Below, in pieces: positions 17,701 to 64,000 of a stretch of 64,000 nucleotides of DNA. The notes below the pieces were generated by a model. That model was not told the origin of the DNA. It saw nothing but the letters and a program-made list of their open reading frames with translations, and made no database searches. Position numbers and translations under genes: made by a program. Within the stretch, counting starts at the first letter, position 1. Each line of letters opens with the position of its first letter. This stretch comes from Macrostomum lignano (lineage: Eukaryota), in the NCBI GenBank assembly GCA_002269645.1, contig NIVC01000022.1, positions 372,001 to 436,000 of the forward strand. The letters run 5' to 3'.

Positions 17701-20700
17701 CCCCAAGGTCCAATCTCAAAGCTACACGGGGTCCATCTCAAATCTTCACAAAGACACCCAAGGTCAAATCTCAAAGCTACACGGGGTCCATCTTAAATCT
17801 TCACAAAGACACCCAAGATCCAATCTCAAAGCTACACGGGGTCCATCTCAAATCTTCACAAAGACACCCAAGGTCCAATCTCAAAGCTACCCAAGGTCCA
17901 TCTCAAATCTTCACAAAGACACCCAAGATCCAATCTCAAAGCTACCCAAGGTCCATCTCAAATCTTCACAAAGACACCCAAGGTCCAATCTCAAAGCTAC
18001 ACGGGGTCCATCTCAAATCTTCACAAAGACACCCAAGGTCCAATCTCAAAGCTACACGGGGTCCATCTCAAATCTTCACAAAGACACCCAAGGTCCAATC
18101 TCAAAGCTACACGGGGTCCATCTCAAATCTTCACAAAGACACCCAAGGTCCAATCTCAAATCTTCACAAAGACACCAGAGGTCCAATCTCAAATCTTCAC
18201 GGGGTCCATCTCAAATCTTCACAAAGACACCAGAGGCCCACCTCAACGCTTCACAAAGACACCAGAGGTCCAATTTCAAATCTTCACGGGGTCCATCTCA
18301 AATCTTCACAAAGACACCAGAGGCCCACCTCAACGCTTCACAAAGACACCAGAGGTCCAATTTCAAATCTTAACAAAGACACCAGAGGCCCACCTCAACG
18401 CTTCACAAAGACACCAGAGGTCCAATTTCAAATCTTAACAAAGACCCAATAGGTCCATCTCAAAGGCACCAGTCACAAACCTCCCCAGATGTCCAGGCCG
18501 CTGTCGTATCCTCCCAACTCGTTGAACCAGCGCCGCGTCATAGCGAAGAGGCCGCCGGCCATGACGGGGCTGGCGAAGGGCTCCGCACGGTGCCGCAGGC
18601 TCTCCGACAGCAGCGGCAGCCGCTTGTAGTGGAAGCTGTTCCAGCTCCAGCTGCCCCGCGCGCCCGTGTCCTGCGACCGGATCTCGAAGGTCTCCTGGTC
18701 GATGACGTCGATGAACGGGCAGACGACGGTGCGGTAGTCCTCGGCGATGGGGTGCAGCAGCGGTGGCAGCCAGTTGACGCCACACTCGCAGTGCGAGTCC
18801 ATCACGATGACGACGTCGGCTGTGACGGCGGCGATGCCGCGCATGCGGGCGCGGATCAGGCCTTCGCGCTTGGGGGCGCGCAGCACCCGGGCGAAGCCGC
18901 TCTGGGGGAAGTGCTTGGCCAGGGCCGCCTCCAGCGGGCCGCCCAGCGCCGGCTTCTGGCTGGCGTCGTCAACCAGGATGATCTCCGTGAGCAGCTGAGG
19001 CGGCGCCCTGGCGCGGCAGGACACGGCGGTGCGGAGCAGGGTGGACAGGTGCTCCTCGTGAAAGGGGATGACGAGTGCAGCCGTGGGCAGACGGCGGTAG
19101 TGCAGCTGCGAGCGGCACTCGGGGTAGCGCAGGTCGGGTATTGACCGGTCCAGGGCGATGCTGTCGCTCAGCAGTGCGTTGAAGCCGTTGGCCTGGAACA
19201 GGTCGGCCTTCTGGCGGGCGCTGGCAGACGCAGGCAGGGAGGCCGGGCGGCCGCCCTCGCCGAGGCCGGAGCGTCGCGAGTCCGCCTCGATGGCGGCGTA
19301 GTCGTGCCAGTCTTTCAGCGCTGACCGGGGGTGAAGATGGATGCGCGTCAGATATACAAAAATATTCTGTCTGCTCACAGACGGGCTTTTTTTCGAGGGG
19401 CTAATTTTTGTCAAGGGCGGGGCGAGAGCCCTACTGATGATATTTTAGCGCCAATTTAGCGCCGCATACGGCACTTTAGCGCCAATTTAGCGCCGCATAC
19501 GGCACTTTAGCGCCAATTTAGCGCCACAGGTGACACTTTAGCGCCTATTCAGCGCCGCATACGGCACTTTAGCGCCACAAGTGACACTTTAGCACCAATT
19601 TAGCGCCACAGGTGACACTTTAGCGCCAATTCAGCGCCGCATACGGCTCTTTAGCGCCAATTTAGCGCCACAGGTGACATTTAAGCACCGCAGGTGACAC
19701 TTTAGCGCGAATTTAGCGCCGCATACGGCACTTTAGCGCCAATTCAACGCCGTAGGTGACATTTTAGCGCCAATTTAGCGCCACAGGTGACACTTAAGCG
19801 CCAGTTAAGCGCCGCAGGTGACACTTTAGCGCCAATTTAGCGCCACAGGTGACACTTAAGCGCCGCAGGTGACACTTAAGCGCCAGTTAAGCGCCACAGG
19901 TGACACTTAAGCGCCAATTTAGCGCCGCAAGTGACACTTAAGCGCCGCAGGTGACACTTTAGCGCCAATTCAACGCCGTAGGAGACATTTTAGTGCCAAT
20001 TTAGCGCCACAGGTGACACTTAAGCGCCAATTTAGCGCCGCAAGTGACACTTAAGCGCCGCAGGTGACACTTTAGCGCCAATTCAACGCCGTAGGAGACA
20101 TTTTAGTGCCAATTTAGCGCCACAGGTGACACTTAAGCGCCAATTTAGCGTCGCAGGTGACATTTTGGCGCCAATTTAGCGCCGCAGATGACACTCTAGC
20201 GCCAATGTAGCGCCGCAGGTGACACTCTAGCGCCAATTTAGCGCCGCAGGTGACATTTTGGCGCCAATTTAGCGCCGCAGGTGACACTCTAGCGCCAATT
20301 TAGCACCACAGGGGACACTTAAGCGCCAATTTAGCGCCACAAGTGACACCTTAAAGACTTTAGCGCCTATTTACGTGCAGATAGAATTTTGACTTTAATT
20401 AATTAAAATACACTACACTTAAATTCAATAATTGTTCACCAAGACCGAAATAATAAACTTCAAAGAGGAGTTAACATGCTAGTCTATTATATTACATTTT
20501 TCTAGTTAAAGAGCACCAGTGCTAGTAGCACATTTTACTCTTTAATATCTGTATTTATATATCTGTCAAGCATATCTGTGTGTTGAAATCTAACCGAACT
20601 CACAGTGCGAATGCCTGTCGCCCCGCCTAGGCGAGTGGCCGCCCCAGCCCCACCAGCCCAGCAGCAGCAGGCCCAGCAGCAGGAGCAGCAGAGGCGACTT

Positions 20701-31181: not shown

Positions 31182-34100
31182 TCAAACAGGCGGAGGTGGA
31201 GGCGGCGCAGGCGGCGACCGAGCGCTTCTGGTGCTGCTGGATCGGCGGGACAGCGGGGGCGGCGGCGGCGGCGGTGCCCTGGGCCCGTTAGCGCTGGGCC
31301 TGCCGTTGCCCGGGGAAATGGAGTAGGCCGGTCCCCCTGGCGGACTTCGCGTCGAGTTGAAGAAATACTCCGGATTCTGAAAGGTCGGCGTCTCCACCGT
31401 GGCGGCCAACGGTGGAGGCGGCAACGGCGGCGGCGACGGCGGCGGCGACGACGGCAGCGCCGGCAGCGGCCCGCGCGAGGCCGAGGAGCCGCCACGTTGC
31501 AGGCTGATGGGCTGCAGGTAGCCTTCTGGCGAGTCGGCGCCCTGATGGCACGGATCCGAGGTGTACGAGTTGTCGTTGAACACAAATTTCTGGGGCTGCC
31601 TGCCGCTGCTGCTGGCCTTGCGGCTGTGCGGCGGGGGCGGCGGGGGCAGCGGCGACTGTCTGGCTGGCAGAGTCGTCGCCGTAGCTGACGCCGACGTCGA
31701 TGGACCGTCGACGAAGGCAGTCTCGGCCTCGGCAAACACGTGGTCGCTGCTGCTGCCGCCGCCGCCGAGGCTGGCGTCGAGATAGTCGATGCTGGGACTG
31801 GTTGCCGCGGCGCCGCCGCCCGCCGCCGCCATCTCGGTGCCCTGCTCGTGATGGTCGAGGGTTGTGTAGCTGAGCTCCGGCTGCCGGAAGGCGGCGGCAG
31901 CGGCGGCCGCGGCCGAGGACGGCGACCGGACCGGCTGGTGCCGGGGCGGCGATTCGTTGCCCTCCTCGCACCCGCTGGACTGCCGCTCTGCCGACGAGCC
32001 GGCCTCCGAGTTGCTGCTCCTAGAAGCGTTGCGGGCAAACCGGTCGCCCTGGATGTACACGTAGCGAGCGGGGTCGGTGGCCATCTTCTTGAACTCGATC
32101 TCCACAGAGTCGAAGCTCGGCCTGTGCTGGTCGTTGAGCATCCAGCACTTGATCATGACCATGTAGACATCGAGCGTGCAGATCGGCGGCTGCGGCAGGC
32201 GCTCGCCTTTCTCAAGGTAGTCGGCGATGTCCTTCGGCTTCACGTTGGCGTAGGGCGGCTCGCCGAAGGTGAAAATCTCCCACAGGGTGACGCCGTAGGA
32301 CCAGACGTCGGACTTGTGCGAGAACCGGCGGGACACCAGTGACTCCAGGGCGAGCCACTTCACCGGCAGTTTGCCCCCAGAGGCCGTGTAGGCCTCGTTG
32401 GGCTCGTCAAGCAGTTTGGCGAGGCCGAAGTCGGTGATCTTGACGTTCTTAGCGGAGGCGACCAGCACGTTGCGGCAGGCCAAGTCCCGGTGGATGATCT
32501 GGCAGCGCTCCAGGTAGGCCATGCCGCTGGCGATCTGGGCCGCGTAGCGCAGCAGGTGGCTGCTGCCAATCTGTGAGGTGTCTTTGCGAGCCCTCAGGTA
32601 GTCCCTGAGATTGCCCATCGGCATGAACTGCGTGATGAGCTGCAGCGGCTGCGTCATGCAGATGCCCACCAGGCGGACGCAGTGCGGATGGTCCACCGAG
32701 GCCATGATCTTGCTCTCCTCCAGCAGCTCGCTAGACATGCCGGTGTCCCCGGAGTCCGTCAGGATCTTGATCGCCACCGAGATTTTCCTGTGCTCCGCCT
32801 CGGAGATCCACTCGCCTTTGTAGACGGTGCCGAATGCGCCCGAGCCGACCTCGCGGCCGCGGACGAGCTCCTTCTCCGAGATGGTGATGAGGCTGCCGCG
32901 ATTGGGCAGCGTGGAACCGTCCGGCGGCTTCAGCGGCTCCAGGTCGTCGTCCGCCGACTGGTCGAACGCCGTCCGCTTGCCGCGCTTCGCCCCGTCCCGC
33001 TGCTGCATCCAGTAGCAGACGAAAGCGGCGATCACGGCGATGATCAGCACCACCAGGGCGAGAACAACCGCCACGGCGACTGTTGAAGAAGCTTGAAACA
33101 GGCTGGAGTCCTCGTGCTCGATGTCGCGCACCTCAAGCGGACTGCTGGAGCAGGTCCAGGCCCTCAGTGGGTCATAGAACACCTGGTACGAATGCGTCTC
33201 CGGGCAGCGTTCGACGCAGGTGAAGGCGGAGCTCTCCGGCCTGGAGTAGTTCAGCAGCTGCACGTAGGCGGCTCGCCCGCACTTGTGGCAGTCCTGGCTC
33301 TGGCTGCTCGGCCCCGTACAATTGCTGCACAACTGATGGCACGGCAGGCAGGTGCGATTCGAGTGCACCGGGTAGTAGCCGATCGGACACGTGCCTTTTT
33401 CGTCCCGGCCGGAGCAGCGGACACCCACGCGGGCTGGTGGCTCCTCGCTGGCCGAAGGAGCAATCGTGTAGTAGCGACACTCTGAGCAGTCCGACGCGCT
33501 CTCCGAGCAGCGGAGGCATCTCGGGTCGCACTTCCGGCAGATGGACACGGACAGCGAAGCGCGCTTCTGCAGACTGAGAAAGTCGTCTAACAGGCCGTCG
33601 CTCTGCTCCCGGTTGGGGTCCAGAGCGGACAGGTAGTGCCCGATGGGGCAGGAGTCGGCCAGGCGGTGGCACTGCAACACCAGGCTGGAGTCGGTTGGCG
33701 ACAGCTTGATCGGCATGATGAGGGTGCAGAACTGGCAGCCGCCCTGGCCAACTATGGTGGCATTGCCAGTGCAGGTTGGCAGGCCGAGGCCCACCTTGGC
33801 GCACACCTGGGGACACTTGCGACAGACTCTGTTGGAGTCCGGGTACTGATAGTCACGGTTGCAGCTGGGGAGGCACTGGCTGCCATCAAGGTAGAGACCC
33901 GGAACGCAGCGGCTGCAGTCCGTGCTGGTCGGGCCTGTGCAGCCTGCGCAGCTGCGGTGGCAGGGGCTGCAGACCCGCTCGCTGACGTTGCCGACGCCCA
34001 GCTGAACGCTCCGGCCAGAGTCGAACCAACCGGGCGCTGTCGGCGGCGAGGCGGCAACGACGTCGCAGGCGGACGCGCAGACGTTGCCCGCCCGGACGCC

Positions 34101-35822
34101 GGTGCAGCGGACGCAGGCGTCGGGCCCGGGGCCCCAGCAGCCGTAGCTCCGGTCGCACTGACTGTGGCAGGCGGCGGGTTGGCTGTAGGGGCAGCCGGAA
34201 CGCAGCTGGCCATTTTTAAGCTTCTCAGCAATGGCATTATCGATTCTCACTAAGCCGTTCTTCGAAGCGTTTCTGAACTGGATCAAGCCGTCCGCGAAGG
34301 CCCGGTCGGATGGCAGGAAGCCGGGGCAGTAGGCAAATGTAATGTTGGAAGAAGCGGTTGGCCTGGGCATCAGGGAGATTATGATTTCTGTAGAGATGAC
34401 GTGGCGCAAGGAGGAGAGGCCCAGGAACTGGATGTGCTCGGAGTTCACAAAGACGTGCTCCATTGAGCGGCCGGGTGTCACGTCCAGGCGCTCCAGCTTG
34501 GACAAGAAGGTCAAGTTGGTGACTTCGGGAAAGTCGCGCAGGTTGATTTGCGCACTGCCGCGGAGCACGCGGAGCCGGCTGAACATCTTGTACAGCTGGG
34601 ACAGCGTCAGCCGCCTCGCGCCGAATAAACCCTTCTCCGAGAAGCAGACAGAATTGATGGCGAATTGGCCGATGTACTCCGTGCAGAGTCGGCTCTCATT
34701 AGTCAAGCCCTCCATCAGTGGGTTATCGACTCCGCAGATGAAGGAGGCCGAGTCGACGGGCGCCCGGCAGATGTGCGAGGCCACGGTCGGCACGCACTGG
34801 TTGTCGGCGTTGGCCGAGAGTCCGTCGGTGCACTTGCTGACGCAGGCGTCCACCTGGATGAAGAAAGAATCCGGGCAGCGGGCGGCGCACACGGGCCCGT
34901 AGGAGAAGAGTTTCGTGGCCGACTGAATGTGCTGCGTCTTTGCCGGGTCGTAGACGGTCTTCAGGCTGCAGGTGTCCACGCAGGTGCCGTTGGAGTTGAA
35001 CTTCCGGCAGCCGAAGCACTGATTGGACTGGACGCCGAAGCAGCCGCCGAGGCACTGTTCGGAGCAGCAGCGCTCTGTCTTGGCCGATTCCATGAAGCAG
35101 CGCTGCCGAGGGCACTCCCGCTGGGACACGGAGATGCAGCGGGACCGGGCCTGGCACTGGTCCGGCCCGGGGCCCCAGCAGTGCCGCCGGCCGTCGCTGG
35201 GCCATACCGGACAGTCCGGGTGGCAGCGGTCGGCTAATCCTGTGCAGTTCGTACTCGGTTTGACAGTCTGGATGCGAGTGTCGCGAAACAGCTCCTCACT
35301 GTTGATGAATTTCTGCAGGTAGCAGTCGGTGACGTTTTCCAGGTAGATGTTGCCCTGGCCGATGTAGCGCAGGCTGCGCAGGTCCAGCGGCGGCTGCTTC
35401 AGCCGGCAGGATTTATCGGTGTGCAGCACAACAAGGCTGGAGTTGCCCAGATGCGTCGAATACGAGCAGTCGCGGCCGCGGATGATGCGCAGGCTTTTGA
35501 AAGAGAGCGGCGTCGAGTAGCAGGAGCCGATAATCCACAAGCAGCCGGTGATCTCCTCGATGTCGTCCAGGAAGCTGAAGTCAAAGCTCTTATTAGCCGC
35601 TTTGAGTTCGTTCTCGTCAATGTCAAGAATGTGCACGTGGCCGATGACGAACTTGCAGCTGGAGAGGCGCTTGCGCAGGAGAACCATGTTACTGAGGCTA
35701 CCAGTGCCCGTCAGGTCGGCTTCCTTGGTGCCTGAGCACACCGGGGGATTGTAGGCGGCCTCGTTGAGCACAACCCAGCTGCTCAGCAGGACCAGGCAGA
35801 CTGATCGGTATAAGCTGGACAT
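31182..35822 (-). CDS. EGFR: EGFR/ErbB-family receptor tyrosine kinase, single-exon CDS (1546 aa)
   Basis: Signal peptide, L domains, furin-like Cys-rich repeats, TM (VAVAVVLALVVLIIAVIAAFVCYW), kinase GSGAFGTVYKG / VAIK / HRDLACRN / DFGLAK / LPVKWLALES, and a C-tail with FQNPEYF and polyproline. Confidence 0.96.
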   Translation of the reverse strand: MSSLYRSVCLVLLSSWVVLNEAAYNPPVCSGTKEADLTGTGSLSNMVLLRKRLSSCKFVIGHVHILDIDENELKAANKSFDFSFLDDIEEITGCLWIIGSCYSTPLSFKSLRIIRGRDCSYSTHLGNSSLVVLHTDKSCRLKQPPLDLRSLRYIGQGNIYLENVTDCYLQKFINSEELFRDTRIQTVKPSTNCTGLADRCHPDCPVWPSDGRRHCWGPGPDQCQARSRCISVSQRECPRQRCFMESAKTERCCSEQCLGGCFGVQSNQCFGCRKFNSNGTCVDTCSLKTVYDPAKTQHIQSATKLFSYGPVCAARCPDSFFIQVDACVSKCTDGLSANADNQCVPTVASHICRAPVDSASFICGVDNPLMEGLTNESRLCTEYIGQFAINSVCFSEKGLFGARRLTLSQLYKMFSRLRVLRGSAQINLRDFPEVTNLTFLSKLERLDVTPGRSMEHVFVNSEHIQFLGLSSLRHVISTEIIISLMPRPTASSNITFAYCPGFLPSDRAFADGLIQFRNASKNGLVRIDNAIAEKLKNGQLRSGCPYSQPAACHSQCDRSYGCWGPGPDACVRCTGVRAGNVCASACDVVAASPPTAPGWFDSGRSVQLGVGNVSERVCSPCHRSCAGCTGPTSTDCSRCVPGLYLDGSQCLPSCNRDYQYPDSNRVCRKCPQVCAKVGLGLPTCTGNATIVGQGGCQFCTLIMPIKLSPTDSSLVLQCHRLADSCPIGHYLSALDPNREQSDGLLDDFLSLQKRASLSVSICRKCDPRCLRCSESASDCSECRYYTIAPSASEEPPARVGVRCSGRDEKGTCPIGYYPVHSNRTCLPCHQLCSNCTGPSSQSQDCHKCGRAAYVQLLNYSRPESSAFTCVERCPETHSYQVFYDPLRAWTCSSSPLEVRDIEHEDSSLFQASSTVAVAVVLALVVLIIAVIAAFVCYWMQQRDGAKRGKRTAFDQSADDDLEPLKPPDGSTLPNRGSLITISEKELVRGREVGSGAFGTVYKGEWISEAEHRKISVAIKILTDSGDTGMSSELLEESKIMASVDHPHCVRLVGICMTQPLQLITQFMPMGNLRDYLRARKDTSQIGSSHLLRYAAQIASGMAYLERCQIIHRDLACRNVLVASAKNVKITDFGLAKLLDEPNEAYTASGGKLPVKWLALESLVSRRFSHKSDVWSYGVTLWEIFTFGEPPYANVKPKDIADYLEKGERLPQPPICTLDVYMVMIKCWMLNDQHRPSFDSVEIEFKKMATDPARYVYIQGDRFARNASRSSNSEAGSSAERQSSGCEEGNESPPRHQPVRSPSSAAAAAAAAFRQPELSYTTLDHHEQGTEMAAAGGGAAATSPSIDYLDASLGGGGSSSDHVFAEAETAFVDGPSTSASATATTLPARQSPLPPPPPPHSRKASSSGRQPQKFVFNDNSYTSDPCHQGADSPEGYLQPISLQRGGSSASRGPLPALPSSPPPSPPPLPPPPLAATVETPTFQNPEYFFNSTRSPPGGPAYSISPGNGRPSANGPRAPPPPPPPLSRRSSSTRSARSPPAPPPPPPV

Positions 35823-43032: not shown

Positions 43033-46000
43033 CACGCCTCCCCTGAAGAGAGAGTTTGGTCAATGAAATATACCCTAAAAAATATTGATTTCCCATGAAT
43101 CTATGACCCAACAGAAGTCCAAAAAAGCAATAGTTGAAATCCTATCGCATTGTCTGCATAGTGTACAGGTATGCTAATTAGTACAGTGATTTTTAGTACC
43201 AGGTAGGTACTACAAGAAGAACAAGAAGGTCTGAGAGAACATGGCAACCATCCTGCAGCAACGAAAATGCTAAAACAAGGTAGAATTTACGTTTCTGTTC
43301 ATTCTCTGTCACTTATGGTTCATTAATAGTATTTTTATTACCTGTCTATACCTGACTGAGATTAATTTACACATGGAGCTTGTGTTTCCCTAGTAACGTT
43401 TTCAATTTTTTAAAGTTTTTGAAGCAGTGCAGCGATAGACTGGCACTGAGAGTCAAAACAAAGCCAGTAACTATTGAAGAGAGAAAAGTTTCGCAAAAAC
43501 AGAAAGCATAAGCAGAGGTCATTGGGAATTACAAGCTTATTTTGGCGGCAAATGACTACACGGGTAGAATAACTAGAGTAAAATAGCTAGAATAGTTGAG
43601 GGCAAACCCGAATTCAAGTTCCAGCTACTGTGATACAGTACCATTACATGTACTTCAAGCACTTCATTTCATAGAAGGCCTTAAAACCTGCGACAACTTT
43701 CTGCTTTACCCAATACAAACATACGAGTTTAGTGGGTTGTCAAAATACAAGCATTGAATGTAACAGCAAAACCAATGTACTAACTACTAACTACTTTTTT
43801 CAACAGTTTACTTGTAGTTATCTTGGCAGTAGTAAATTGGAATTTGCAAGTTACAAGTTATGACATATTTGGCTCAGATGTGAAATGAATTATAGTTTAT
43901 GATGGATTGCAGTAGACACGTGCTATACTGAGGATGATTTAGGGGGCGCTTATAGCGCTGCCAGGTGGCTTCGAAGTCACTGTGGGCTGATTCAACAGCC
44001 TGTTCACTAAAGCTGCCAAGCCCCTTGCCATACTTGCCGCAGAACGCTGGCACATGGTCAAAAAGCGCGTGCATCTTTGGCGTAACTGAAAGCTCGAGGT
44101 ACCTACATGTCGTCTGGAAGCGAGCAATGTAGAGACTGTAATCAGCTGCCAGACTTTGGCCAAAGCAAGCTTCGCGCACAGCGTTGAAGTCTTGAAGTGC
44201 TGTTGCGTAGAGCTTCAGGTGTGGAGGCAGCACGCTCCACAGCTCACTCGCCTTCAGAAGGAGCTTTTTGCACGCTGGGCCCTCCAGGCAACCTCCATGA
44301 TACTGCTGCCTGCAGATGCCTGCTTCATAGGCCCACTCGTAGGCCTTGTTGCCACCCCAGCTTGCATTGAGAGCATCAAGCAATCGGTTCACAATGCCAA
44401 GCATCATGTGCAGCTCTGGCGGTGGTACCACGTCCAGCAGTTCAGCAGAATCGCTCCCAGGTAGCAGTGGAGGCTGGACGCAGTTGGCAAAGTTTTTGGC
44501 TAGAGGCTGGTGTCCACCAGCTGCCTGAAACTCACTTGCCAGGTGTCGAATTGAGCCGAGCGTCCTCCTTTGTGCTGGTACTTCCCATGGAGGCCTGCCC
44601 TCACAGTACAGGCAGGGATGCGATGAAGAATGGCTCTGGATCCCGCTGATTATGTTTGCCAGTTTAAAATCGCAGGCCAACGTGAAGTTAATGGAGCTGA
44701 TGTCGATGGTTGACATTAGTACACTAACGTTCTGGTAGCATTCTTTGACATCCTCAACAAGGGCCAGGATGAGGATCTTTTTCACTCCAGAGTCCATAAA
44801 TCGGTTAAATTGGGCAGACGAAGTGCATCCTCTGCCATCCACAGTAACGCTGACGCACACCTTTAAGGAATTGCCTCCTCCATCAATCGCAAGTTTCACT
44901 CTCTGGTGCATCTCAGCAGTGCCTCTCGAGTTACTGACATGCGCCAGAAAAGCGTATACATCCCGGCAGAACACGACAGACCGTTCGATCACACACTCTT
45001 GTCCATTAGGCTGTTTGCGGAAAAACTGCCGCTGCTCAGCTGTAAAAAACTTGGCGACACTCTGACCTTCAGCAAACAGAAACTCCTTCAGCCCAGACTG
45101 CACGGCCTTTTTGCTGCCGGACGCTTCTCTGATCACTTGAGCCGCACGTAGCGTCTGACTGGTGCTGAGGTTGAGTGCAGTCTTTACGGCTCGCATAGTG
45201 CTATGCTGGACCGACGCAATCTCGGTAGTTGATGTACCAGCCACTTGAACTTGGAGTGGGCGCCCACCTGTGCCAGAAGTCAGGCTTGCAGTTGCTAAGG
45301 AGCCAGAAGAGGTGGCTACACCCAGCTTCTCACGCAGAAGACCGCAGGCTACGTGCTCCCTTGAGTAGGGGCTTAGGGCATCAAGATAGCGCAGTTTTGC
45401 CGCCTGTCCACACTGGTGCCTCAATCCACGTGCCACTGGCGATGAGCACGTCTCACAGCGTTTGACGACACTGTCTTCCATCGGCCCAGGTGCCTTATTT
45501 GGAGGGCGACCAAGTGGCGTCGCAATACCAGCAGCAGACTCATCTGGCATGAAAGGGTGATATACAGCCACATTCTTGTTGGCTCTGCTGGAGCCCACAT
45601 GGCACACCCAGCAGTTGCAATCGGGGCGTTCGCGAGTGAGTGGCGGAAGACAGCGCAGATCTGCAATAACTTGCTCGTAGGGCATTTTTGGCGGCAGAGG
45701 TGTTGGTGCAGGGCTGCTTTGTGACATCAGCTTGATTCTGCAGGAGTTGCAGATGCTTAAAGGCAGAAATCCACGATGGTCAGCGAAGCCTGGCAGCACA
45801 TGGCATTCAATCAGCGCTTCAAGAGTGGCTGTCAGCGGTCGGTCTCCCTTCCGAAAGCACAAGATGCACACACATCTTCGATTTTCTTCATGTGAGCGCT
45901 TGTTGTTTGGCATTGTTCTGGAGCAGCCAGTGTCGCGGTATTTTTTTATTATTCTTTCTTGTATTTCTACCTGCACGCTCAATTAGTCTAATATATTGCA

Positions 46001-54323: not shown

Positions 54324-57300
54324 TCAATCTTGACCTGCAGCAGCCCCTAAAAGCCCCGCAGTCCGCTGCTTGACCCCCAGCGCTCCGAGTCGCTGGCCAG
54401 GTTCCGGGTGCCACAGCGCTGCCAGCAGGCCGTCAGCGAGGACGCGACAGACGGGACCGCCGGCCAGCCAGGCGTCAGCAGGCAGGGCGGGCCTGGCGCA
54501 CCGCGGCCGGCACACCAGCTGGCGCATGTCATCCAGGCTGGGATTGGCTGGCGCCCACTCGGCGTAGGGCAGACTGTAGGGCCCGAGGCAGCGCTGGCCG
54601 ACCTCCCACAGCACCAAGCCGAGGGCGTACAAGTCGGCCTGCTGGAGGTTCGCGAAGCTGCCGAGCGCCGGACCGCCGTCAAGGAGCTCTGGGCTCAGGT
54701 AGCGCACAGTGCCAACTCGCCTGCGGTTTCGCACAAAATCAAAGGATTGAAAACCCTTCCCACAACTTCATGGGAAAGATATACAATTGAACTCAATGGG
54801 GATTCAACTCCCACAATTGAACTCAATGGGGATTGAAATCCCACAATGTAACTCAATGGGGATGAAAATCCCACAATGTAACTTAATGGGGATGAAAATC
54901 CCACAATGTAACTCAATGTGGATTGAAATCCCACAATGTAACTCAATGGGGATTGAAATCCCACAATGTAACTCAATGGGGATTGAAATCCCACAATGTA
55001 ACTCAATGGGGATTGAAATCCCACAATGTAACTCAATGGGAATAAAATTCCACAATGAAACTCAATGAGGAATAAAATCCCACAGTGAAACTCAATGGGG
55101 ATTAAAATCCCACAATGTAACTCAATGGGGATTAAAATCCCACAATGTAACTCAATGGGGATTAAAATCCCACAATGTAACTCAATGGGGATGAAAATCC
55201 CACAATGTAACTCAATGGGGATTGAAATCCCACAATGTAACTCAATGGGGATTGAAATCCCACAATGTAACTCAATGGGGATTGAAATCCCACAATGTAA
55301 CTCAATGGGGATTGAAATCCTACAATGTAACTCAATGGGGATTGAAATCCCACAATGTAACTCAATGGGGATTGAAATCCCACAATGTAACTAACTCAAT
55401 GGGGATTGAAATCCCACAATGTAACTAACTCAATGGGGATTGAAATCCCACAATGTAACTAACTCAATGGGGATTGAAATCCCACAATGTAACTAACTCA
55501 ATGGGGATTGAAATCCCACAATGTAACTAACTCAATGGGGATTGAAATCCCACAATGTAACTCAATGGGGATTGAAATCCCACAATGTAACTCAATGGGG
55601 ATTGAAATCCCACAATGTAACTAACTCAATGGGGATTGAAATCCCACAATGTAACTCAATGGGGATTGAAATCCCACAATGTAACTCAATGGGGATTGAA
55701 ATCCCACAATGTAACTCAATGGGGATTGAAATCCCACAATGTAACTCAATGGGGATTGAAATCCCACAATGTAACTCAATGGGGATTGAAATCCCACAAT
55801 GTAACTCAATGGGGATTGAAATCCTACAATGTAACTCAATGGGGATTGAAATCCCACAATGTAACTCAATGGGGATTGAAATCCCACAATGTAACTAACT
55901 CAATGGGGATTGAAATCCCACAATGTAACTAACTCAATGGGGATTGAAATCCCACAATGTAACTAACTCAATGGGGATTGAAATCCCACAATGTAACTAA
56001 CTCAATGGGATTGAAATCCCACAATGTAACTAACTCAATGGGGATTGAAATCCCACAATGTAACTCAATGGGGATTGAAATCCCACAATGTAACTCAATG
56101 GGGATTGAAATCCCACAATGTAACTAACTCAATGGGGATTGAAATCCCACAATGTAACTCAATGGGGATTGAAATCCCACAATGTAACTCAATGGGGATT
56201 GAAATCCCACAATGTAACTCAATGGGGATTGAAATCCCACAATGTAACTCAATGGGGATTGAAATCCCACAATGTAACTAACTCAATGGGGATTGAAATC
56301 CCACAATGTAACTCAATGGGGATTGAAATCCCACAATGTAACTAACTCAATGGGGATTGAAATCCCACAATGTAACTCAATGGGGATTGAAATCCCACAA
56401 TGTAACTCAATGGGGATTGAAATCCCACAATGTAACTCAATGGGGATTGAAATCCCACAATGTAACTCAATGGGGATTGAAATCCCACAATGTAACTTAA
56501 TGGGGACGAAAATCCCACAATCCAACATGACAACATAATGGGGATTAAGACCTAAAAATCGGTTCAATGAGAATTAAAATTAAAGAGGCAGAAAGAGACA
56601 GACCTGTCCCCATCCCGCCGCAGCTCGTCAGTCTCCCTGACGGCCAGTCCGAAGTCCGCCAGGCAGCAGGTGAGGTCGGCCTTCACCAGAATATTATTCG
56701 ATTTCACGTCGCAGTGTGCGATGCCGGGCTTAACGAAACCGGCCGAGATGAGCTCGGTGTGCAGGTGGGCCAGGCCGGTCACAATGCTGTGGCACATGCC
56801 GGCCGCCACCCGACAGCTGATGCTGTGCTCCATCAGGTAGGTCTGGCCAATGAGAATGGGGCAGAGTGAATCTCAGCTCTGAGATTATCACTGACACATA
56901 ATCTCACACCTGTACCGATAGTCTGGGATTATCACTGACACGGATAATCTCACACCTGTACCGATAGTCTGGGATTATCACTGACACGGATAATCTCACA
57001 CCTGTACCGATAGTCTGAGATTATCACTGACACAGATAATCTCACACCTGTACCGATAGTCTGGGATTATCACTGACACAGATAATCTCACACCTGTACC
57101 GATAGTCTGGGATTATCACTGACAGATAATCTCACACCTGTACCCATAGAGTCTGAAATCATCACTGACACAGATAATCTCACACCTGTACCCATAGAGT
57201 ATGAGATTTTCACTGACACAGATAATCTCACACCTGTACGGATAGATTCTGATATATATTATCACTGACACAGATAATCTTACACCTGTACCCATAGAAT

Positions 57301-57877
57301 ATGAGATTATCACTGACACAGATAATCTCACACCTGTACCGACACTAAAAGGATATCAAATGACGGAGAATAGCTATGGCTATAAAGGGCGACCACCCTC
57401 ATCCCCCAACGCAGCCGCAGACCTGCAGGGACCCGTTGGCATGGTAATCGGTGATCAGCCACAGCTGAGTTTCCCAGCCGGCGTCCACGTTGTCAATAGC
57501 GATGAAGCCCAGGATGCTGGGGTGCGCCAGGCCAGGCGTGGCGTAGATCTCGCCTTCCCGAGACCAGGAGGCCTCCGCTCGGCTGTGAAAAATCTTCACC
57601 GCCACCGTGTCGCTGACCTCTCCGGTGCGCCACGTGCCCTGCGATGACAGACGGGAGCAATGGGATTTTGATGGACTTATGTCTGTCTGTCTGTCCGTCT
57701 GTTTTAGTGTCTGTCTGTCCGTCTGTTTTAGTGTCTGTCTGTCCGTCTGTTTTAGTGTCTGTCTGTCTGGCTGTCCGTCTGTTTTGTGTCTGTCTGTCTG
57801 TCTGTCTGGCTGTCCGTCTGTTTTAGTGTCTGTCTGTCTGTCTGTCTAGCTGTCCGTCTGTTTTAGTGTCTGTCTGT

Positions 57878-57908
<31 letters not shown>

Positions 57909-57913
57909 TTTAG

Positions 57914-57944
<31 letters not shown>

Positions 57945-58040
57945 CTGTCTGGCTGTCCGTCTGTTTTAGTGTCTGTCTGTCTGTCTGTCTGTTTTAGTGT
58001 CTGTCTGTTGTCTGTCTGTCTGTTTGTCTGTCTGTTTTAG

Positions 58041-58071
<31 letters not shown>

Positions 58072-58123
58072 TTTAGTGTCTGTCTGTTGTCTGTCTGTCT
58101 GTTTGTCTGTCCGTCTGTTTTAG

Positions 58124-58174
<51 letters not shown>

Positions 58175-58242
58175 TTTAGTGTCTGTCTGTCTGTCTGTTT
58201 TAATGTCTGTCTGTCTGTCCGTCTGTTTTAGTGTCTGTCTGT

Positions 58243-58276
<34 letters not shown>

Positions 58277-58426
58277 GCTGTCCGTCTGTTTTAGTGTCTG
58301 TCTGTCTGTCCGTCTGTTTTAGTGTCTGTCTGTCTGTTTTAGTGTCTGTCTGTCTGTCTGGCTGTCCGTCTGTTTTAGTGTCTGTCTGTCTGTCTGTCTA
58401 TCTGTCTGTCTGTCCGTCTGCTTTAG

Positions 58427-58457
<31 letters not shown>

Positions 58458-58550
58458 TTTAGTGTCTTTCTGTCTGTCTGGCTGGCTGTCTGTTTTAGTG
58501 TCTGTCTGTCTGTCCGTCTGCTTTAGTGTCTGTCTGTCTGTCTGTTTTAG

Positions 58551-58581
<31 letters not shown>

Positions 58582-58653
58582 TTTAGTGTCTGTCTGTCTG
58601 TCTGTTTTAATGTCTGTCTGTCTGTCTGTCCGTCTGTTTTAGTGTCTGTCTGT

Positions 58654-58689
<36 letters not shown>

Positions 58690-59553
58690 CGTCTGTTTTA
58701 GTGTCTGTCTGTCTGTCCGTCTGTTTTAGTGTCTGTCTGTCTGGCTGTCCGTCTGTTTTAGTGTCTGTCTGTCTTAATGTCTTAGTGTTTGTACGTCTGG
58801 CAGTCTGACTATCTCTGTCTGTCCGTCTGTCCCTCTGTCTTAGTGACGTTAGTGTATGTCTTACGAGCGTAGAGCCTGTGCTCCAGGCCTCCATCTCTCA
58901 CCCTGAAAACCTGGCCAAACCGGCCCTGCCCGACCGGGCAATCCACAGTGGTGTCCCTGGCGATGGTCCGCCTAACCAGGTGCGGATTTCCGTAGCCGCT
59001 GCTGGAACAGCCCTGCTGCTGCTGCTGCCGCCAAACCGACGCCAGCTCATGCTGATGAAGCCGACCCTCGGCCCCAGCCTCCTGCTCCTGGTGCAGCCGC
59101 TGCATCAGCACATTTTGATCTCGCACGCTGTCGGCATCGGCGGCGCCACCCCGCCGGCCTCGGAAGAGCCGCATCCGGGCCAGCAGGCGGTTCAGCTTGT
59201 CGCGCCTCGGCAGGCCGCCGCAGCGCTGGCAGGCGAGGACCAGGCCGGCGGCGGCAGTGGCCAGGGCCGCCAGTCCTACGAAGCCGGCGACAGCGCTGGC
59301 GAACGCCGAGGCCGCCGTCCAGCCGCCTGGCTGCCTGGGCGGGCCGAAGCGCAGCTGGCTTAAATTGGAGAGCCGCACCGCCTGCTGCTGAGCATCGATC
59401 AGCGGCATCGCTTCGGCCAGGTTGCAGAGACTGCCGTTTTTGCAACAATTTCTGCCCGGCGACAGGTGGCAAAATGAGCCAGCTAGCAGAGACACCGTGG
59501 CGTCGGACTCGGCAGATGGGGAGTCAGCAATTAACTGGCGGCGAGTCAGGCAC
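54324..59553 (-). CDS. TGFBR1-like: TGF-beta/activin type I receptor serine/threonine kinase, exons 2-5 (ALK4/5/7-like, divergent)
   Basis: Exons 59553-58902 (CLT...[13 protein letters not shown]-like [19 protein letters not shown]), 57638-57423 ([16 protein letters not shown]45 [18 protein letters not shown]), 56842-56604 ([18 protein letters not shown]) and 54720-54324 ([23 protein letters not shown]). Phases 0/0/2 are consistent. The signal peptide must lie on an upstream exon. Confidence 0.92.
54790..56535. repeat. 30-bp (34-bp variant) minisatellite (AATGGGGATTGAAATCCCACAATGTAACTC) filling receptor intron 4
   Basis: Contiguous tandem copies with an internal GGGATT-GA-AATCCC palindrome and no spacers. 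Confidence 0.96.
56880..57345. repeat. 46-bp minisatellite (GATTATCACTGACACAGATAATCTCACACCTGTACCGATAGTCTGG) in receptor intron 3
   Basis: About 10 copies with an internal GAGATTATC...GATAATCTC hairpin. Confidence 0.93.
57682..58790. repeat. (CTGT)n microsatellite interspersed with GTTTTAGT in receptor intron 2
   Basis: Directly visible. Confidence 0.96.
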
Positions 59554-59555
59554 CT

Positions 59556-60400
59556 GGGTGTTTTGGGGAGATTACAGGCATGGGGAGCAGTCTGTCAGCT
59601 GGGTGTCTTGGGGAGATTAGAGACATGGGGAGCAGTAGTGTATTGGGGAGATTAGAGACATGGGGAGCAGTAGTGTATTGGGGAGATAAGAGACATGTGG
59701 AGCAGTCTGTGAGCTAAGTGTATTGGGGAGATTAGAGACATGGGGAGCAGTCTGTCAGCTAAGTGTATTGGGGAGATTACAGGCATGGGGAGCAGTCTGT
59801 CAGCTGGGTGTCTTTGGGAGATTAGAGACATGGGGAGCAGTCTGTCAGCTGGGTGTTTTGGGGAGATTAGAGACATGTGGAGCAGTCTGTCAGCTAAGTG
59901 TATTGGGGAGATTAGAGGCATGGAAAGCAGTCTGTCAGCTAAGTGTATTGGGGAGATTAGAGACATGGGGAGCAGTCTGTCAGCTAAGTGTATTGGGGAG
60001 ATTAGAGGCATGGAAAGCAGTCTGTGAGCTAAGTGTATTGGGGAGATTAGAGGCATGGAAAGCAGTCTGTGAGCTAAGTGTATTGGGGAGATTACAGGCA
60101 TGAAAAGCAGTCTGTGAGCTAAGTGTATTGGGGAGATTACAGGCATGGAAAGCAGTCTGTGAGCTAAGTGTATTGGGGAGATTACAGGCATGAAAAGCAG
60201 TCTGTGAGCTAAGTGTATTGGGGAGATTAGAGGCATGGAAAGCAGTCTGTGAGCTAAGTGTATTGGGGAGATTACAGGCATGGAAAGCAGTCTGTGAGCT
60301 AAGTGTATTGGGGAGATTAGAGACATGGGGAGCAGTCTGTCAGCTAAGTGTATTGGGGAGATTAGAGGCATGAAAAGCAGTCTGTGAGCTGGGTGTTTTC
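59556..60400. repeat. 46-bp minisatellite (GGGAGATTAGAGGCATGGAAAGCAGTCTGTGAGCTAAGTGTATTGG) abutting the exon-2 acceptor
   Basis: About 18 copies. The terminal unit supplies AAAACACCCAG on the minus strand. Confidence 0.94.
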
Positions 60401-60641
60401 TGTTTTTTGTTGTCTGTGAGCGCGGTGCAACACAATATGACATTTGGTGCTGCACTTAGAATCTATGTCAAAACAGTCAAGCGCAGAATGGCCTAAATGT
60501 CATAAGTTAGCAAAGTTATTTGGAATGCTTCACGTAACAGTGCTGCTTATGTGTGCCACCACTGCTAAAGCAATGCAAAGTGCCAAAAAGTAGCTTTATT
60601 GTCACAATGCCTCTTGGGCCCAGGTGTGCACTTGGTCTCTT

Positions 60642-60783
60642 CATTCATACTTTTACATAGATCATTTGTAGACATATAGCATTTTGAATGCTCTAAAGGA
60701 AAATTTATAGTATAGCATAGTGGTTTATTAATAAGGTGAAGAAACTGCTGTTTTACATCTTCAAAACATGACTCATTTCTTTT
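60642..60783 (-). pseudogene. Duplicated 142-bp fragment of the 62936-63522 exon (pseudo-exon)
   Basis: Aligns to 63111-63252 with 6 substitutions (4 non-synonymous, including CC to CY). An in-frame TAG lies just upstream. Confidence 0.8.
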
Positions 60784-60844
60784 CAAGAGTGACCCCTTAG
60801 TACATTTTTGCTAGACCCTTGATGTGCATATATGCATTCTTAGA

Positions 60845-61486
60845 TCCTATTGGAATAAGTTGACAAAACGCAGACGACCATCCATTGCATTTTCAGATTT
60901 TCCTGGTGTCACGTCGCGCGACAGTGGTGTCAAGTAGTGTGTTGCTTTGTGCGACAGTGTGGCAACTTGGCAGCTGGCATTGTCATGTGTTGCATTGCAG
61001 CCTGGATCTGCAGCCAAAACCTTGAAAACTGTGTTTCATTGTAATCTGTTCATGGACTTGTTTCTCAGTATTTAAATGTTTCAAACATGTTTGATAATAA
61101 CTAGTTTTTGAATTGTTTTTTTATTTTGACAATGAAGTAACTAATACTTCAAATATAATTTTTAGAAATGTCACTTGTTAGTTACAACGTGTGCACTGTT
61201 TTTCTAACTGCTGTACCTTTGTTGTTTTACTTCTTATTGTTTTTAAATTTCATTTCTTTTTCTGCGAAATTGAAAAGAATGCTTTTGTCCTTCGCCCCAT
61301 GGTCTTGGTCTTGGCTGCGTGGCTGCTATGGCATCCCCCCAGTCATTTGGTCAACAGACATTGGTGTTGTGTCGCGTGTTGCTGCCCCCTAGTCAACAAA
61401 ATTTGGTGTTGTGTTGCGCTTTTGAGGGCACAATTTTGGCACCCGTGTTGCGCATCTGCGGGTTTTTGAAACTTATTCCAATAGGG
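60845..61486. mobile_element. MITE-like element with imperfect TIRs ((T/C)CCTATTGGAATAAGTT...)
   Basis: The left end at 60845 is the reverse complement of AACTTATTCCAATAGGG ending at 61486. TCTTAGA flanks both sides. No ORF of note. Confidence 0.55.
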
Positions 61487-61569
61487 TCTTAGATTTTATT
61501 TTTAGTATACAGGACTAAAATAAGGGATGAAAGGATTACAGTCATTTCAGTAACAAGATATTTTGGTAA

Positions 61570-62590
61570 TAATTGTTTCGGTGACAAGCAAAAGTCATTT
61601 TGGTGACAAGAAAATACCTTTTGGTGATAGCCATTCTGTTTTTAAACAAAATAAAATAATAATAATAAGCCATTTTAAGGGATATCAAGCCTTAACTTTT
61701 TCATAATTTTCTGGGATGGTTGAACATTGCTTTATTTAATTTTGTTTATTTACAATTTCAGAATTGCAATCTTTTATATTGATATGTTTTCCTATCCAAT
61801 TCCAATTGTGTCTAGTGAATATTAGGAGTCGGATGTGATCACAATCGTGATCACAATTTTGTGAATTCACGACCATTTTTTTCACGATCGTTATTTTCTT
61901 GAAACCCGTTCACGACAGTCGTGAATTTCCACTTTATTATATTTTTATTAGAAGTATAACTTTTCTACTTGGTTTACCAAAATATGTTAACACAAATGTG
62001 TAAAAGAGTAATAAATTTTAAATTTGTTGACTTGAGAGCATTAACGAGTACCTATTATCAATTTATAAATATTTCTTTTCTTGTTTTGTTATTTTCAAAA
62101 CTTGTAACTTACAAGCTCAAAATACATGTATGCAGTTATAAATTCACAATCACGATCACGCCCAACTTTGAAAATTTCACAAAATTTCATGCCCAACCAA
62201 AATTTTCTACTCGTCCGACCTCTAGTGAATATATCTACTTTTCTTATAGTCAGCATTTAATGATCTCTATAGGTTTATGGTTTATGTGTCTGAATATTCT
62301 GAGACAATTCAAAATGATCTGCATAGAAAGAAAACCATATAATTAGTTTAATTTCTTTTCCTACATATACTAATCTATTGATGGAAATTTTCAAATATGA
62401 ACAAAGCATGAATCTTAACAAAATAACTATAAGCTAATATTATTAAGCACCTTCTGCCACTAAAATGACTATAATTATAAATTCTTTAATTTTAAAAGCA
62501 ACTTGTCACCAAAATGACTATTTGTCACCAAAACATCTGTCACCAAAATGACTTGTTACTAAAACAACTAGTACTCGGATAAAATGACTC
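61570..62590. mobile_element. Foldback-like element with reiterated GTCACCAAAATGAC motifs and a possible nested ~400-bp insert
   Basis: AGTCATTTTGGTGACAA copies at ~61570-61630 are mirrored by TTGTCACCAAAATGACT copies at ~62500-62590. A direct repeat TCTAGTGAATAT lies at 61811 and 62221. Confidence 0.45.
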
Positions 62591-62935
62591 ACTACATAAA
62601 CAAAGTCTTCAAGGAAGAAGTAATATTTGTTTTTTACAAGTATATTAGTTTTGCAATAGTTTTTACTATTAAATGAAAAATTAAAATGTTAAAAAAGTTA
62701 TTACTATAAAATTCTTAGAAATTATAATTGTAAACATTTATGATTTAGTATTTGCATATTCACTCAAAATAGACTATATAGTTATAAAAAAAAGAATAAT
62801 AAAATGTGAAGACCTCACTGGCTTATGCCAATATATTTATTGCCAAATTTGGGGTGGGTTCACAGTATTTCATAGTAGGCCTAAAATAAAAAAATAATTA
62901 ATTAAAAGTAGTTAATACAAGTCAAAAGAACTTAC

Positions 62936-63522
62936 CCAAATGATACATAATTTAATGTTAGTATATTTTTGTTCCATACTTTGCAAAAATTTAAAGTTTG
63001 TTTATCATTATGTAAGTTATTACATTCTGTGTATTGATAAAGCTGCTGATTGCAAATTGTATTTATAGCCAAGCTATTGCCATTGGCATTATAATTTAAT
63101 ATCCTTTTAACATTCATACTTTTACATAGATCATTTGTAGACATATAGCATTTTGAATGCTCTAAAGGCAAATTTATAGTACAGCATAGTGGCTTATTAA
63201 TAAGGTGACGAAACTGCTGTTTAACATCTTTAAAACATGACTCATTTCTTTTTATGTAAGATCCATTTTCAACCATTACACAAGAATATAGCTGGTGAAA
63301 CATAATTGAAACATGCACATTACTATTCCATGCTTTGATCATATCGGATGAAATTAGATTTTGTTGACAATATGAATAGTCATTCTTAGGTTCAAAAGAT
63401 TCCATCGAAACCGGAAAATCCATAATATGGGGCGAGTAAACACAAATTGAAGTTCGACACAAACATTCTTCACACACAAAGTACAGAATGCTAATTATGA
63501 GAATAATTTTCGTTGAATACAT
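62936..63522 (-). CDS. Signal-peptide, Cys-rich exon; probable exon 1 of the type I receptor (full model 696 aa)
   Basis: MYSTKIILIISILYFVCEECLC signal, 14 Cys in 196 codons, ends at TTTGG|GTAAGT (phase 2). This matches the phase needed by the exon at 59553, and the join gives C-x16-C (FCKVWNKNILTLNYVSFG|CL). The link is inferred, not proven. Confidence 0.65.
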
Positions 63523-64000
63523 AGGTACTAATTATATAATATTATAAATTAAACACATAAATAATCGTAAATTAGGATATTATAGGATATCGGAATGATG
63601 TAAAAGCCTTACCACTCGCTGCACCTGCCTGTGTTCCCTTTAGAAAGTGTTGTTCTAAGAAACTAAGCAAGTTAAAATAGTAAAAATAAAAACAAAACAA
63701 TTTGATATAAAAAGTTTAGCTGAGATATATATTTATTTAAAAATTATTATTTTTTAAATTGATTTTTAAGTGTCATGAATTTTTTAATTTAACTTCTTAT
63801 GGCAATATTCGCATTTTTAACTCTATAATTTATTAGAAATGAACTAAAAAGCGCTCACTATTGAATTAGAAGCAGCCAATTCAGTGAAAATCACGACATC
63901 GTGCCTTTATAACTTGCTGGTAATGATGCTTACTGATGTTATTGATGCTTGATTATGTATGCTTCTGTTTTTTTTTATTAGAGGCAGGGGGTTGTGTGCA

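Follow-up and report, generated by a model that had tools for sequence, protein, structure and literature searches.

A divergent TGF-beta-family type I receptor gene of Macrostomum lignano with a long, cysteine-rich ectodomain and an AT-rich first exon

The DNA considered here (hereafter the window) is a stretch of 64,000 nucleotides (nt) from the flatworm Macrostomum lignano (contig NIVC01000022.1 of assembly GCA_002269645.1, positions 372,001 to 436,000 of the forward strand), and all coordinates given below are those of the window. Its minus strand carries a five-exon gene that is already public, including the join between its first two exons, as BOX15_Mlig032202g1. The positions of interest are very probably the 5' half of this expressed gene, which encodes a divergent type I receptor serine/threonine kinase of the TGF-beta family. 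Few metazoan receptors are as conserved in architecture as the TGF-beta type I receptors, whose three-finger ectodomain has about 100 amino acids (aa). Both the gene and its receptor class are known; the ectodomain is lineage-specific and previously undescribed, and a literature search returned no description of BOX15_Mlig032202g1 or of Macrostomum type I receptors.

Exon 1 is an ATG-initiated open reading frame (ORF) of 195 full codons plus two bases that ends in TTTGG|GTAAGT (Table 1). Counted as 196 codons, it compares with 133 codons for the longest methionine-initiated ORF in 2000 shuffles of positions 62000-64000. The acceptor, cccag|G at 59554/59553, opens a frame that reads FG|CLTRRQ across the junction and onward through a Cys-box, a transmembrane (TM) segment, a glycine-serine (GS) motif and the kinase. 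Exons 2-5 were located by tblastn with human ALK5 as a probe, together with splice-site inspection; their boundaries are AG/GT, and the frame is continuous to a terminal TGA. The spliced five-exon product has 696 aa and shows 100% residue identity to GenBank PAA93745.1, the protein of BOX15_Mlig032202g1 (labelled P0001 below), and the gene span in the deposited record, 9199 nt, is that of 63522-54324. A preliminary description of the window, made from the letters alone, had joined the exon at 63522-62936 to position 59553 through the phase-2 donor GG|GTAAGT, which was correct to the base. It had also held that exon 2 needs an upstream exon with a signal peptide. Kyte-Doolittle hydropathy yields just two hydrophobic peaks in the receptor, at residues 3-24 (signal peptide) and 275-305 (TM), and exon 1, the true 5' exon, is the source of the sole signal-peptide-like segment as well as of about 175 extracellular residues.

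Table 1. Positions of the receptor gene's exons, domains and motifs in the window, with the exon-1 copy that lies in intron 1.
Feature	Position	Strand	Remarks
Exon 1	62936..63522	minus	start codon 63520-63522; first two bases of Gly196 at its end
Signal peptide	aa 1 to ~22, 63457-63522	minus	exon 1; from hydropathy
N-terminal Cys-rich module	Cys27-Cys133	minus	exon 1, which also carries Cys157, Cys167 and Cys180
GT of phase-2 donor GG|GTAAGT	62934..62935	minus	same donor in homeolog L003; AGCTGG|gtaagt in paralog L001
Intron 1	59554..62935	minus	3382 nt; AT-to-GC boundary, two elements with terminal inverted repeats, 157-nt exon-1 copy, 45-nt minisatellite
Exon 2	58902..59553	minus	Cys197, Cys-box, TM helix, juxtamembrane region, GS motif, glycine loop
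Cys-box C224-x7-CC-x5-CN	59421-59471	minus	exon 2
TM helix	aa 274-303, 59232-59321	minus	exon 2
Degenerate GS motif	58956-59006	minus	exon 2; PF08515 21.4 bits vs cut-off 21.3
Glycine loop GQGRFGQV	58908-58931	minus	exon 2
Exon 3	57423..57638	minus	VAVK lysine 57588-57605; L45 loop 57465-57503
Exon 4	56604..56842	minus	catalytic loop HCDVKSNN 56693-56716; DFG 56648-56656
Exon 5	54324..54720	minus	activation segment to SPE (54687-54695), C-lobe, stop TGA 54324-54326
Copy of exon-1 interior	60642-60798	minus	157 nt, 92% identical to 63111-63267; reading frame open

The gene models of GCA_002269645.1 were built from RNA-seq data assembled on the genome (StringTie/TACO, TBONE), with ORFs called by TransDecoder (PMC5730564), so that the junction 62936|59553 presumably rests on spliced reads. 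The same architecture recurs on three separate assembly contigs and on independent Logan contigs. On another contig, a homeolog (P0063/L003) has five exons and the same splice-site contexts as BOX15_Mlig032202g1; its exon 1 is 97.8% identical, versus about 92% in the flanks, and differs by five synonymous and five non-synonymous codons and an in-frame 3-nt indel, with every Cys kept. The paralog BOX15_Mlig028938g1 (P0005/L001), which has 35% identity overall to BOX15_Mlig032202g1, has a first exon encoding residues 1-174 that ends AGCTGG|gtaagt in phase 2, at a Gly aligned with Gly196, and is followed by a 9.5-kb intron. BLASTP of the P0001 ectodomain against that of P0005 gives E=3e-7 in one collinear alignment spanning the junction. 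The Logan contigs L004/L005 (two SRA runs) add a third family member, whose signal peptide, N-terminal module, Cys-box, GS motif and kinase all lie in one ORF of 815 aa without interruption (automatic gene calling had begun at an internal Met); since this ORF covers what is five exons in M. lignano, the contig resembles a spliced mRNA.

These relatives with the same architecture bear directly on the suggestion, made in the preliminary description, that the AT-rich exon was captured or that the gene is chimeric. On such a reading, the AT-rich ORF would belong to another gene and would have been joined to the receptor either by a recent capture or by an error of annotation or assembly. The extreme composition contrast within 4 kb and the transposon insertions in intron 1 are what would be expected, but the recurrence on separate assembly contigs and independent Logan contigs is not, nor are the shared intron position, phase and donor of a paralog with 35% identity, an ectodomain alignment that crosses the junction, a sole signal peptide located in exon 1 and cysteines that covary across the junction (see below). 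Because paralogs that are only 35-41% identical share the module, the position and phase of the intron and the AT-rich exon 1, capture as a recent event is excluded, and we consider this explanation as a whole extremely improbable.

What the preliminary description saw correctly is a sharp compositional boundary within one gene. Exon 1 has a GC content of 0.29 and a GC content at third codon positions (GC3) of 0.26, versus 0.63-0.71 and 0.77-0.85, respectively, in exons 2-5, and the step from a GC3 of 0.26 to about 0.8 is family-wide: the L004 transcript has a composition of 0.39-0.41 over its first 600 nt and 0.69-0.88 thereafter, and the L001 paralog shows a weaker step (0.32, then 0.46-0.58). 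In M. lignano, coding sequences have 58.7% GC versus 45.9% for the genome (PMC6739440), and the other genes in the window (an EGFR-like intronless ORF and two GT2-type exons) have a GC3 of 0.80-0.88. GC-rich codons being the norm for the species, the kinase exons are ordinary and exon 1 is the outlier. The surroundings of exon 1 are 27-29% GC, and its third positions match the adjacent non-coding DNA (0.27); at both genomic loci it sits in an AT-rich block of at least 10 kb, with the boundary either inside intron 1 or at its end. The contrast is thus no sign of chimerism, as exon 1 of every family member has the composition of its long AT-rich block. Nor can expression level be its cause, since the contrast lies within one mRNA. 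A GC3 step from 0.26 to 0.8 in one transcript, kept among old paralogs, offers a natural experiment on the drivers of codon GC in M. lignano.

An older origin from AT-rich DNA has to be weighed separately. In this scenario, the exon of the N-terminal module came from AT-rich DNA, either non-coding or derived from a transposon, or had a de novo origin, and in the family's ancestor it was added 5' of a type I receptor; fingers 1 and 2 of that receptor then decayed, and the composition of exon 1 would still reflect both its origin and its location. Outside the family the module has no homologue, the codon composition of exon 1 is the same as in the non-coding DNA around it (0.26-0.29 vs 0.27), a long intron parts exon 1 from the remainder at both loci, and a fragment of exon 1 has been copied within intron 1, beside transposon insertions. 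However, the N-terminal modules of the paralogs are only 20-25% identical (versus 35-41% for the paralogs overall), so that synonymous sites are long saturated and an unameliorated signal should be gone. The composition is explained just as well by the present surroundings of exon 1, there is no known donor, and an ancestral ectodomain may instead have diverged rapidly. On balance, we regard an ancient acquisition as rather doubtful.

The assignment to TGF-beta type I receptors, which had already been proposed, agrees with the kinase, the Pfam match of the GS motif, the Cys-box and the L45 loop. PF00069/PF07714 match P0001, in which VAVK, the alphaC Glu, the catalytic Asp/Asn, DFG and SPE were located; the match of PF08515 (GS) to the exon-2 product, just above its cut-off (Table 1), is borderline at E=1.8e-4. 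The best named matches outside Macrostomum are insect TGFBR1 and ACVR1, with a kinase identity of 45-47%. The L45 loop is much closer to the TGFBR1/Baboon/DAF-1 type than to the ACVR1 type: it shares D, N, D, G, T and Q with ADNKDNGTWTQ of TGFBR1/Baboon and only D, T and Q with SDMTSRNSCTQ of ACVR1. In a neighbour-joining tree (100 bootstraps), the Macrostomum family forms a monophyletic long branch (92/100). The Cys-box of TGF-beta receptor ectodomains is defined as CC-x5-8-CN (PMC10073696), and CCKNGSLCN at residues 232-240, which is invariant across family members, conforms to that definition. Two motifs set BOX15_Mlig032202g1 and its homeolog apart from the paralogs: the GS core is SSSGYG, versus the canonical TGSGSG/TGSGAG in the paralogs, and the catalytic loop has HCD instead of HRD (Arg to Cys), whereas the paralogs keep HRD. 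With both changes, this copy may be a functionally drifting duplicate, or it may be differently regulated.

The ectodomain, described earlier as unusually long and Cys-rich, indeed has a mature length of about 250 aa, more than twice the usual length, and 16 Cys (positions 27, 52, 81, 96, 113, 114, 125, 133, 157, 167, 180, 197, 224, 232, 233 and 239). It is conserved within the family: 12 of the 16 Cys are common to its members, and the N-terminal module (about 110-130 aa) has eight conserved Cys. The family members thus have in common 12 core Cys, the intron position and the AT-rich first exon, and the long ectodomain appears to define a small, Macrostomum-restricted receptor family of at least three paralog lineages.

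Searches for relatives of this ectodomain led back to the family. An hmmsearch of 1.84 billion representative proteins with an ectodomain profile found three clusters, all in the receptor family itself, and reached no canonical receptor. In Pfam, the six family ectodomains had no match at E<=10 (including Activin_recp, PF01064, and UPAR_LY6), and sequence and profile searches of the PDB gave just a chance match (E=0.69) to a peroxidase-related protein. A word-indexed protein search with exon 1 or the ectodomain found no match even though its database holds the identical P0001; having missed that sequence, in which the AT-biased exon 1 encodes a product rich in Asn, Lys and Ile, it is uninformative, and the exhaustive HMMER search was relied on instead. 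An hhalign comparison with 11 canonical type I ectodomains aligned 11 columns at the Cys-box with a probability of 0.1%, and the N-terminal module alone aligned with nothing in the canonical ectodomains. As far as can be judged from these comparisons, the canonical three-finger activin-receptor domain is recognisable only by its last two disulfides, those of the Cys-box, and the N-terminal module has no detectable relative outside the family.

The preliminary description had offered a different view of the ectodomain, namely two tandem three-finger folds of the Ly6/activin-receptor type, the N-terminal module being a second ligand-binding domain. Residues 157-240 of this copy do contain eight Cys in the arrangement C-x9-C-x12-C-x16-C-x26-C-x7-CC-x5-CN, which can be threaded on a minimal three-finger pattern, and the N-terminal module has its own eight conserved Cys. 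The ALK5/ALK2-like C-x16-C hairpin on which that view drew likewise exists as a spacing, C180-x16-C197, followed by FC...CC...CN. Its conservation did not hold up: none of the paralogs has Cys167 or Cys180, and just one of the three has Cys197. Nor is there any internal duplication between the N-terminal and the membrane-proximal module, and Pfam gave no match for any family member, hhalign none beyond the Cys-box. AlphaFold2 gave unusable models for both the whole ectodomain (five-row alignment) and the N-terminal module alone (four-row alignment), with a predicted local distance difference test score (pLDDT) of 31.2 and 36.5, respectively. In both of these low-confidence models residues 59-108 form a helix-hairpin-helix, which speaks weakly against an all-beta finger; by hydrophobic moment, only C96-C113 among four conserved segments looks helical. 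No test favoured tandem three-finger folds, which are, in our view, improbable.

The cysteine pattern instead points to a single structural unit. Cys114 (the second Cys of PLCC), encoded by exon 1, and Cys197, encoded by exon 2, are both present in P0001 and L004 and are both missing from P0005. Gained or lost together, they suggest that the module and the Cys-box region are probably one disulfide-linked unit and not two independent domains. By parity, we infer a Cys114-Cys197 disulfide that would tie the exon-1 module to the part encoded by exon 2, and Cys167-Cys180 would be a copy-specific pair.

Taken further, these observations allow the proposal that a flatworm lineage replaced most of the three-finger domain by a new disulfide-rich fold of about 130 aa without relatives, keeping the Cys-box, and that the exon encoding this fold kept a non-coding, AT-rich synonymous composition across old paralogs. 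We put this forward tentatively, as a possibility on the less likely side. If true, the replacement of the fold would mean that ligands or co-receptors are recognised in a new way in an otherwise very conserved pathway, and the persistence of an AT-rich exon would mean an exon-scale, position-dependent driver of codon composition. A remodelled ectodomain, 2.5-fold longer, in a transgenic, regenerating model flatworm is, moreover, an accessible case of rebuilt ligand recognition.

In functional terms, exon 1 supplies the signal peptide and about 175 extracellular residues, and its phase-2 junction within Gly196 joins it to exon 2, which adds the Cys-box, the TM helix, the degenerate GS motif and the first part of the kinase. 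By analogy with the rest of the family, the single-pass receptor would bind a TGF-beta/activin-type ligand through its remodelled ectodomain, a type II receptor would phosphorylate the GS region, and the signal would pass via the ALK5/DAF-1-like L45 loop to a Smad2/3-type receptor-regulated Smad (R-Smad).

Several points weigh against a divergent type I receptor with a remodelled, lineage-specific ectodomain. The transcript evidence for this copy is indirect, by way of the method of the deposited annotation. The GS motif lies just at the Pfam threshold, HRD is replaced by HCD, and the neighbour-joining tree never joins the family to the TGFBR1 or the ACVR1 subgroup. The proposed roles of ligand, type II partner and Smad would follow from family membership. 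As to the ectodomain, the models at pLDDT 31 and 36.5 give no structure, the Cys114-Cys197 pairing is drawn from three lineages only, and the term 'Macrostomum-restricted' assumes that the Logan runs come from Macrostomum or close relatives. Finally, exon 1 keeps AT-rich synonymous sites in an otherwise GC3-rich mRNA.

Intron 1 contains further sequence of interest. The 157-nt copy of the exon-1 interior is also present in the homeolog (L003, ~7690-7850), within a block of 434 nt over which the copies share 96% identity, more than in the adjacent intron. In the homeolog's copy, CC and NL are retained as in exon 1, which suggests gene conversion. The intronic copy could be a decaying fragment or a candidate cassette exon; read from the sequence, its frame would fit an AG acceptor, and the sole phase-compatible donor, CAA|GTGCAC, is weak. 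Nearby lies a 656-nt element resembling a miniature inverted-repeat transposable element (60838-61493), with terminal inverted repeats (TIRs) of about 25 nt and the target-site duplication TCTTAGA(T); it is cleanly absent from the homeolog L003 and is therefore a recent insertion in this copy. A second TIR-bounded element, at 61590-62522, has 21-nt arms that are 95% complementary and a nested insertion of about 400 nt (61822-62221); the homeolog lacks this insertion and has ATATTCACTAGA a single time. Minisatellites, different in each case, largely fill every receptor intron (59537-60511, 54783-56560, 56878-57342 and 57650-58850), with 45-nt, ~30-nt and ~48-nt units and GACA-rich repeats; the 45-nt array abuts the exon-2 acceptor. 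Arrays stand at the same positions in the homeolog, with different copy numbers.

Elsewhere in the window, an uninterrupted, apparently intronless ORF of 1546 aa (31182-35822, minus strand; GC3 0.85) encodes an EGFR-type receptor tyrosine kinase with Recep_L, Furin-like, GF_recep_IV and PK_Tyr domains. Two GC-rich ORFs, 9264-10019 (plus strand) and 18473-19414 (minus strand), match Glycos_transf_2 and Glyco_transf_7C and resemble polypeptide GalNAc-transferases; possible readings are exons from two genes and an inverted duplication. A 702-aa ORF of intermediate composition at 43874-45982 (minus strand; GC3 0.54) has no Pfam match; its N-terminal motifs are rich in Cys and His, and it may come from a transposon.

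Among known proteins, uPAR and C4.4A, multi-domain members of the three-finger/Ly6-uPAR group, have tandem Cys-rich extracellular modules ending in CC-x-CN and are a lead only, the N-terminal module being linked to them by no sequence, profile or usable structural evidence. DAF-1-like receptors of Strongyloides (672-676 aa) were considered as a precedent for a long ectodomain and set aside, since their CYC...CC...CN domain is canonical and the additional length is found in other parts of the protein. The type I receptors of parasitic flatworms (Echinococcus EmTR1/3/4 and Schistosoma SmTbetaRI) are likewise long (721-772 aa) and divergent, with gene models that are often wrong at the 5' end; they have six to seven Cys before the Cys-box, a GS box and no canonical signal peptide, and their extra length is mostly juxtamembrane (PMC10073696). 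The ectodomain profile matched none of them, and the M. lignano receptor instead has 9-12 mature Cys before the box, a clear signal peptide and extra length that is extracellular.

The closest known systems are the ALK4/5/7, Baboon and DAF-1 receptors. In common with these, the M. lignano receptor has a signal peptide, a single membrane pass, CC-x5-CN just outside the membrane, a GS-type motif with LVRRTIAR between it and the kinase, and an L45 loop of the form DN-D-G--TQ. The difference is that the ectodomain of the known receptors has about 100 aa and 10 Cys, whereas that of the Macrostomum family has about 250 aa when mature and 12-16 Cys, yields no detectable Pfam Activin_recp domain and has N-terminal Cys that depart from the C-x-C-x2-C spacing. 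The SSSGYG core of the GS motif and the HCD of the catalytic loop further distinguish this copy, and the family as a whole branches outside the TGFBR1 and ACVR1 groups.

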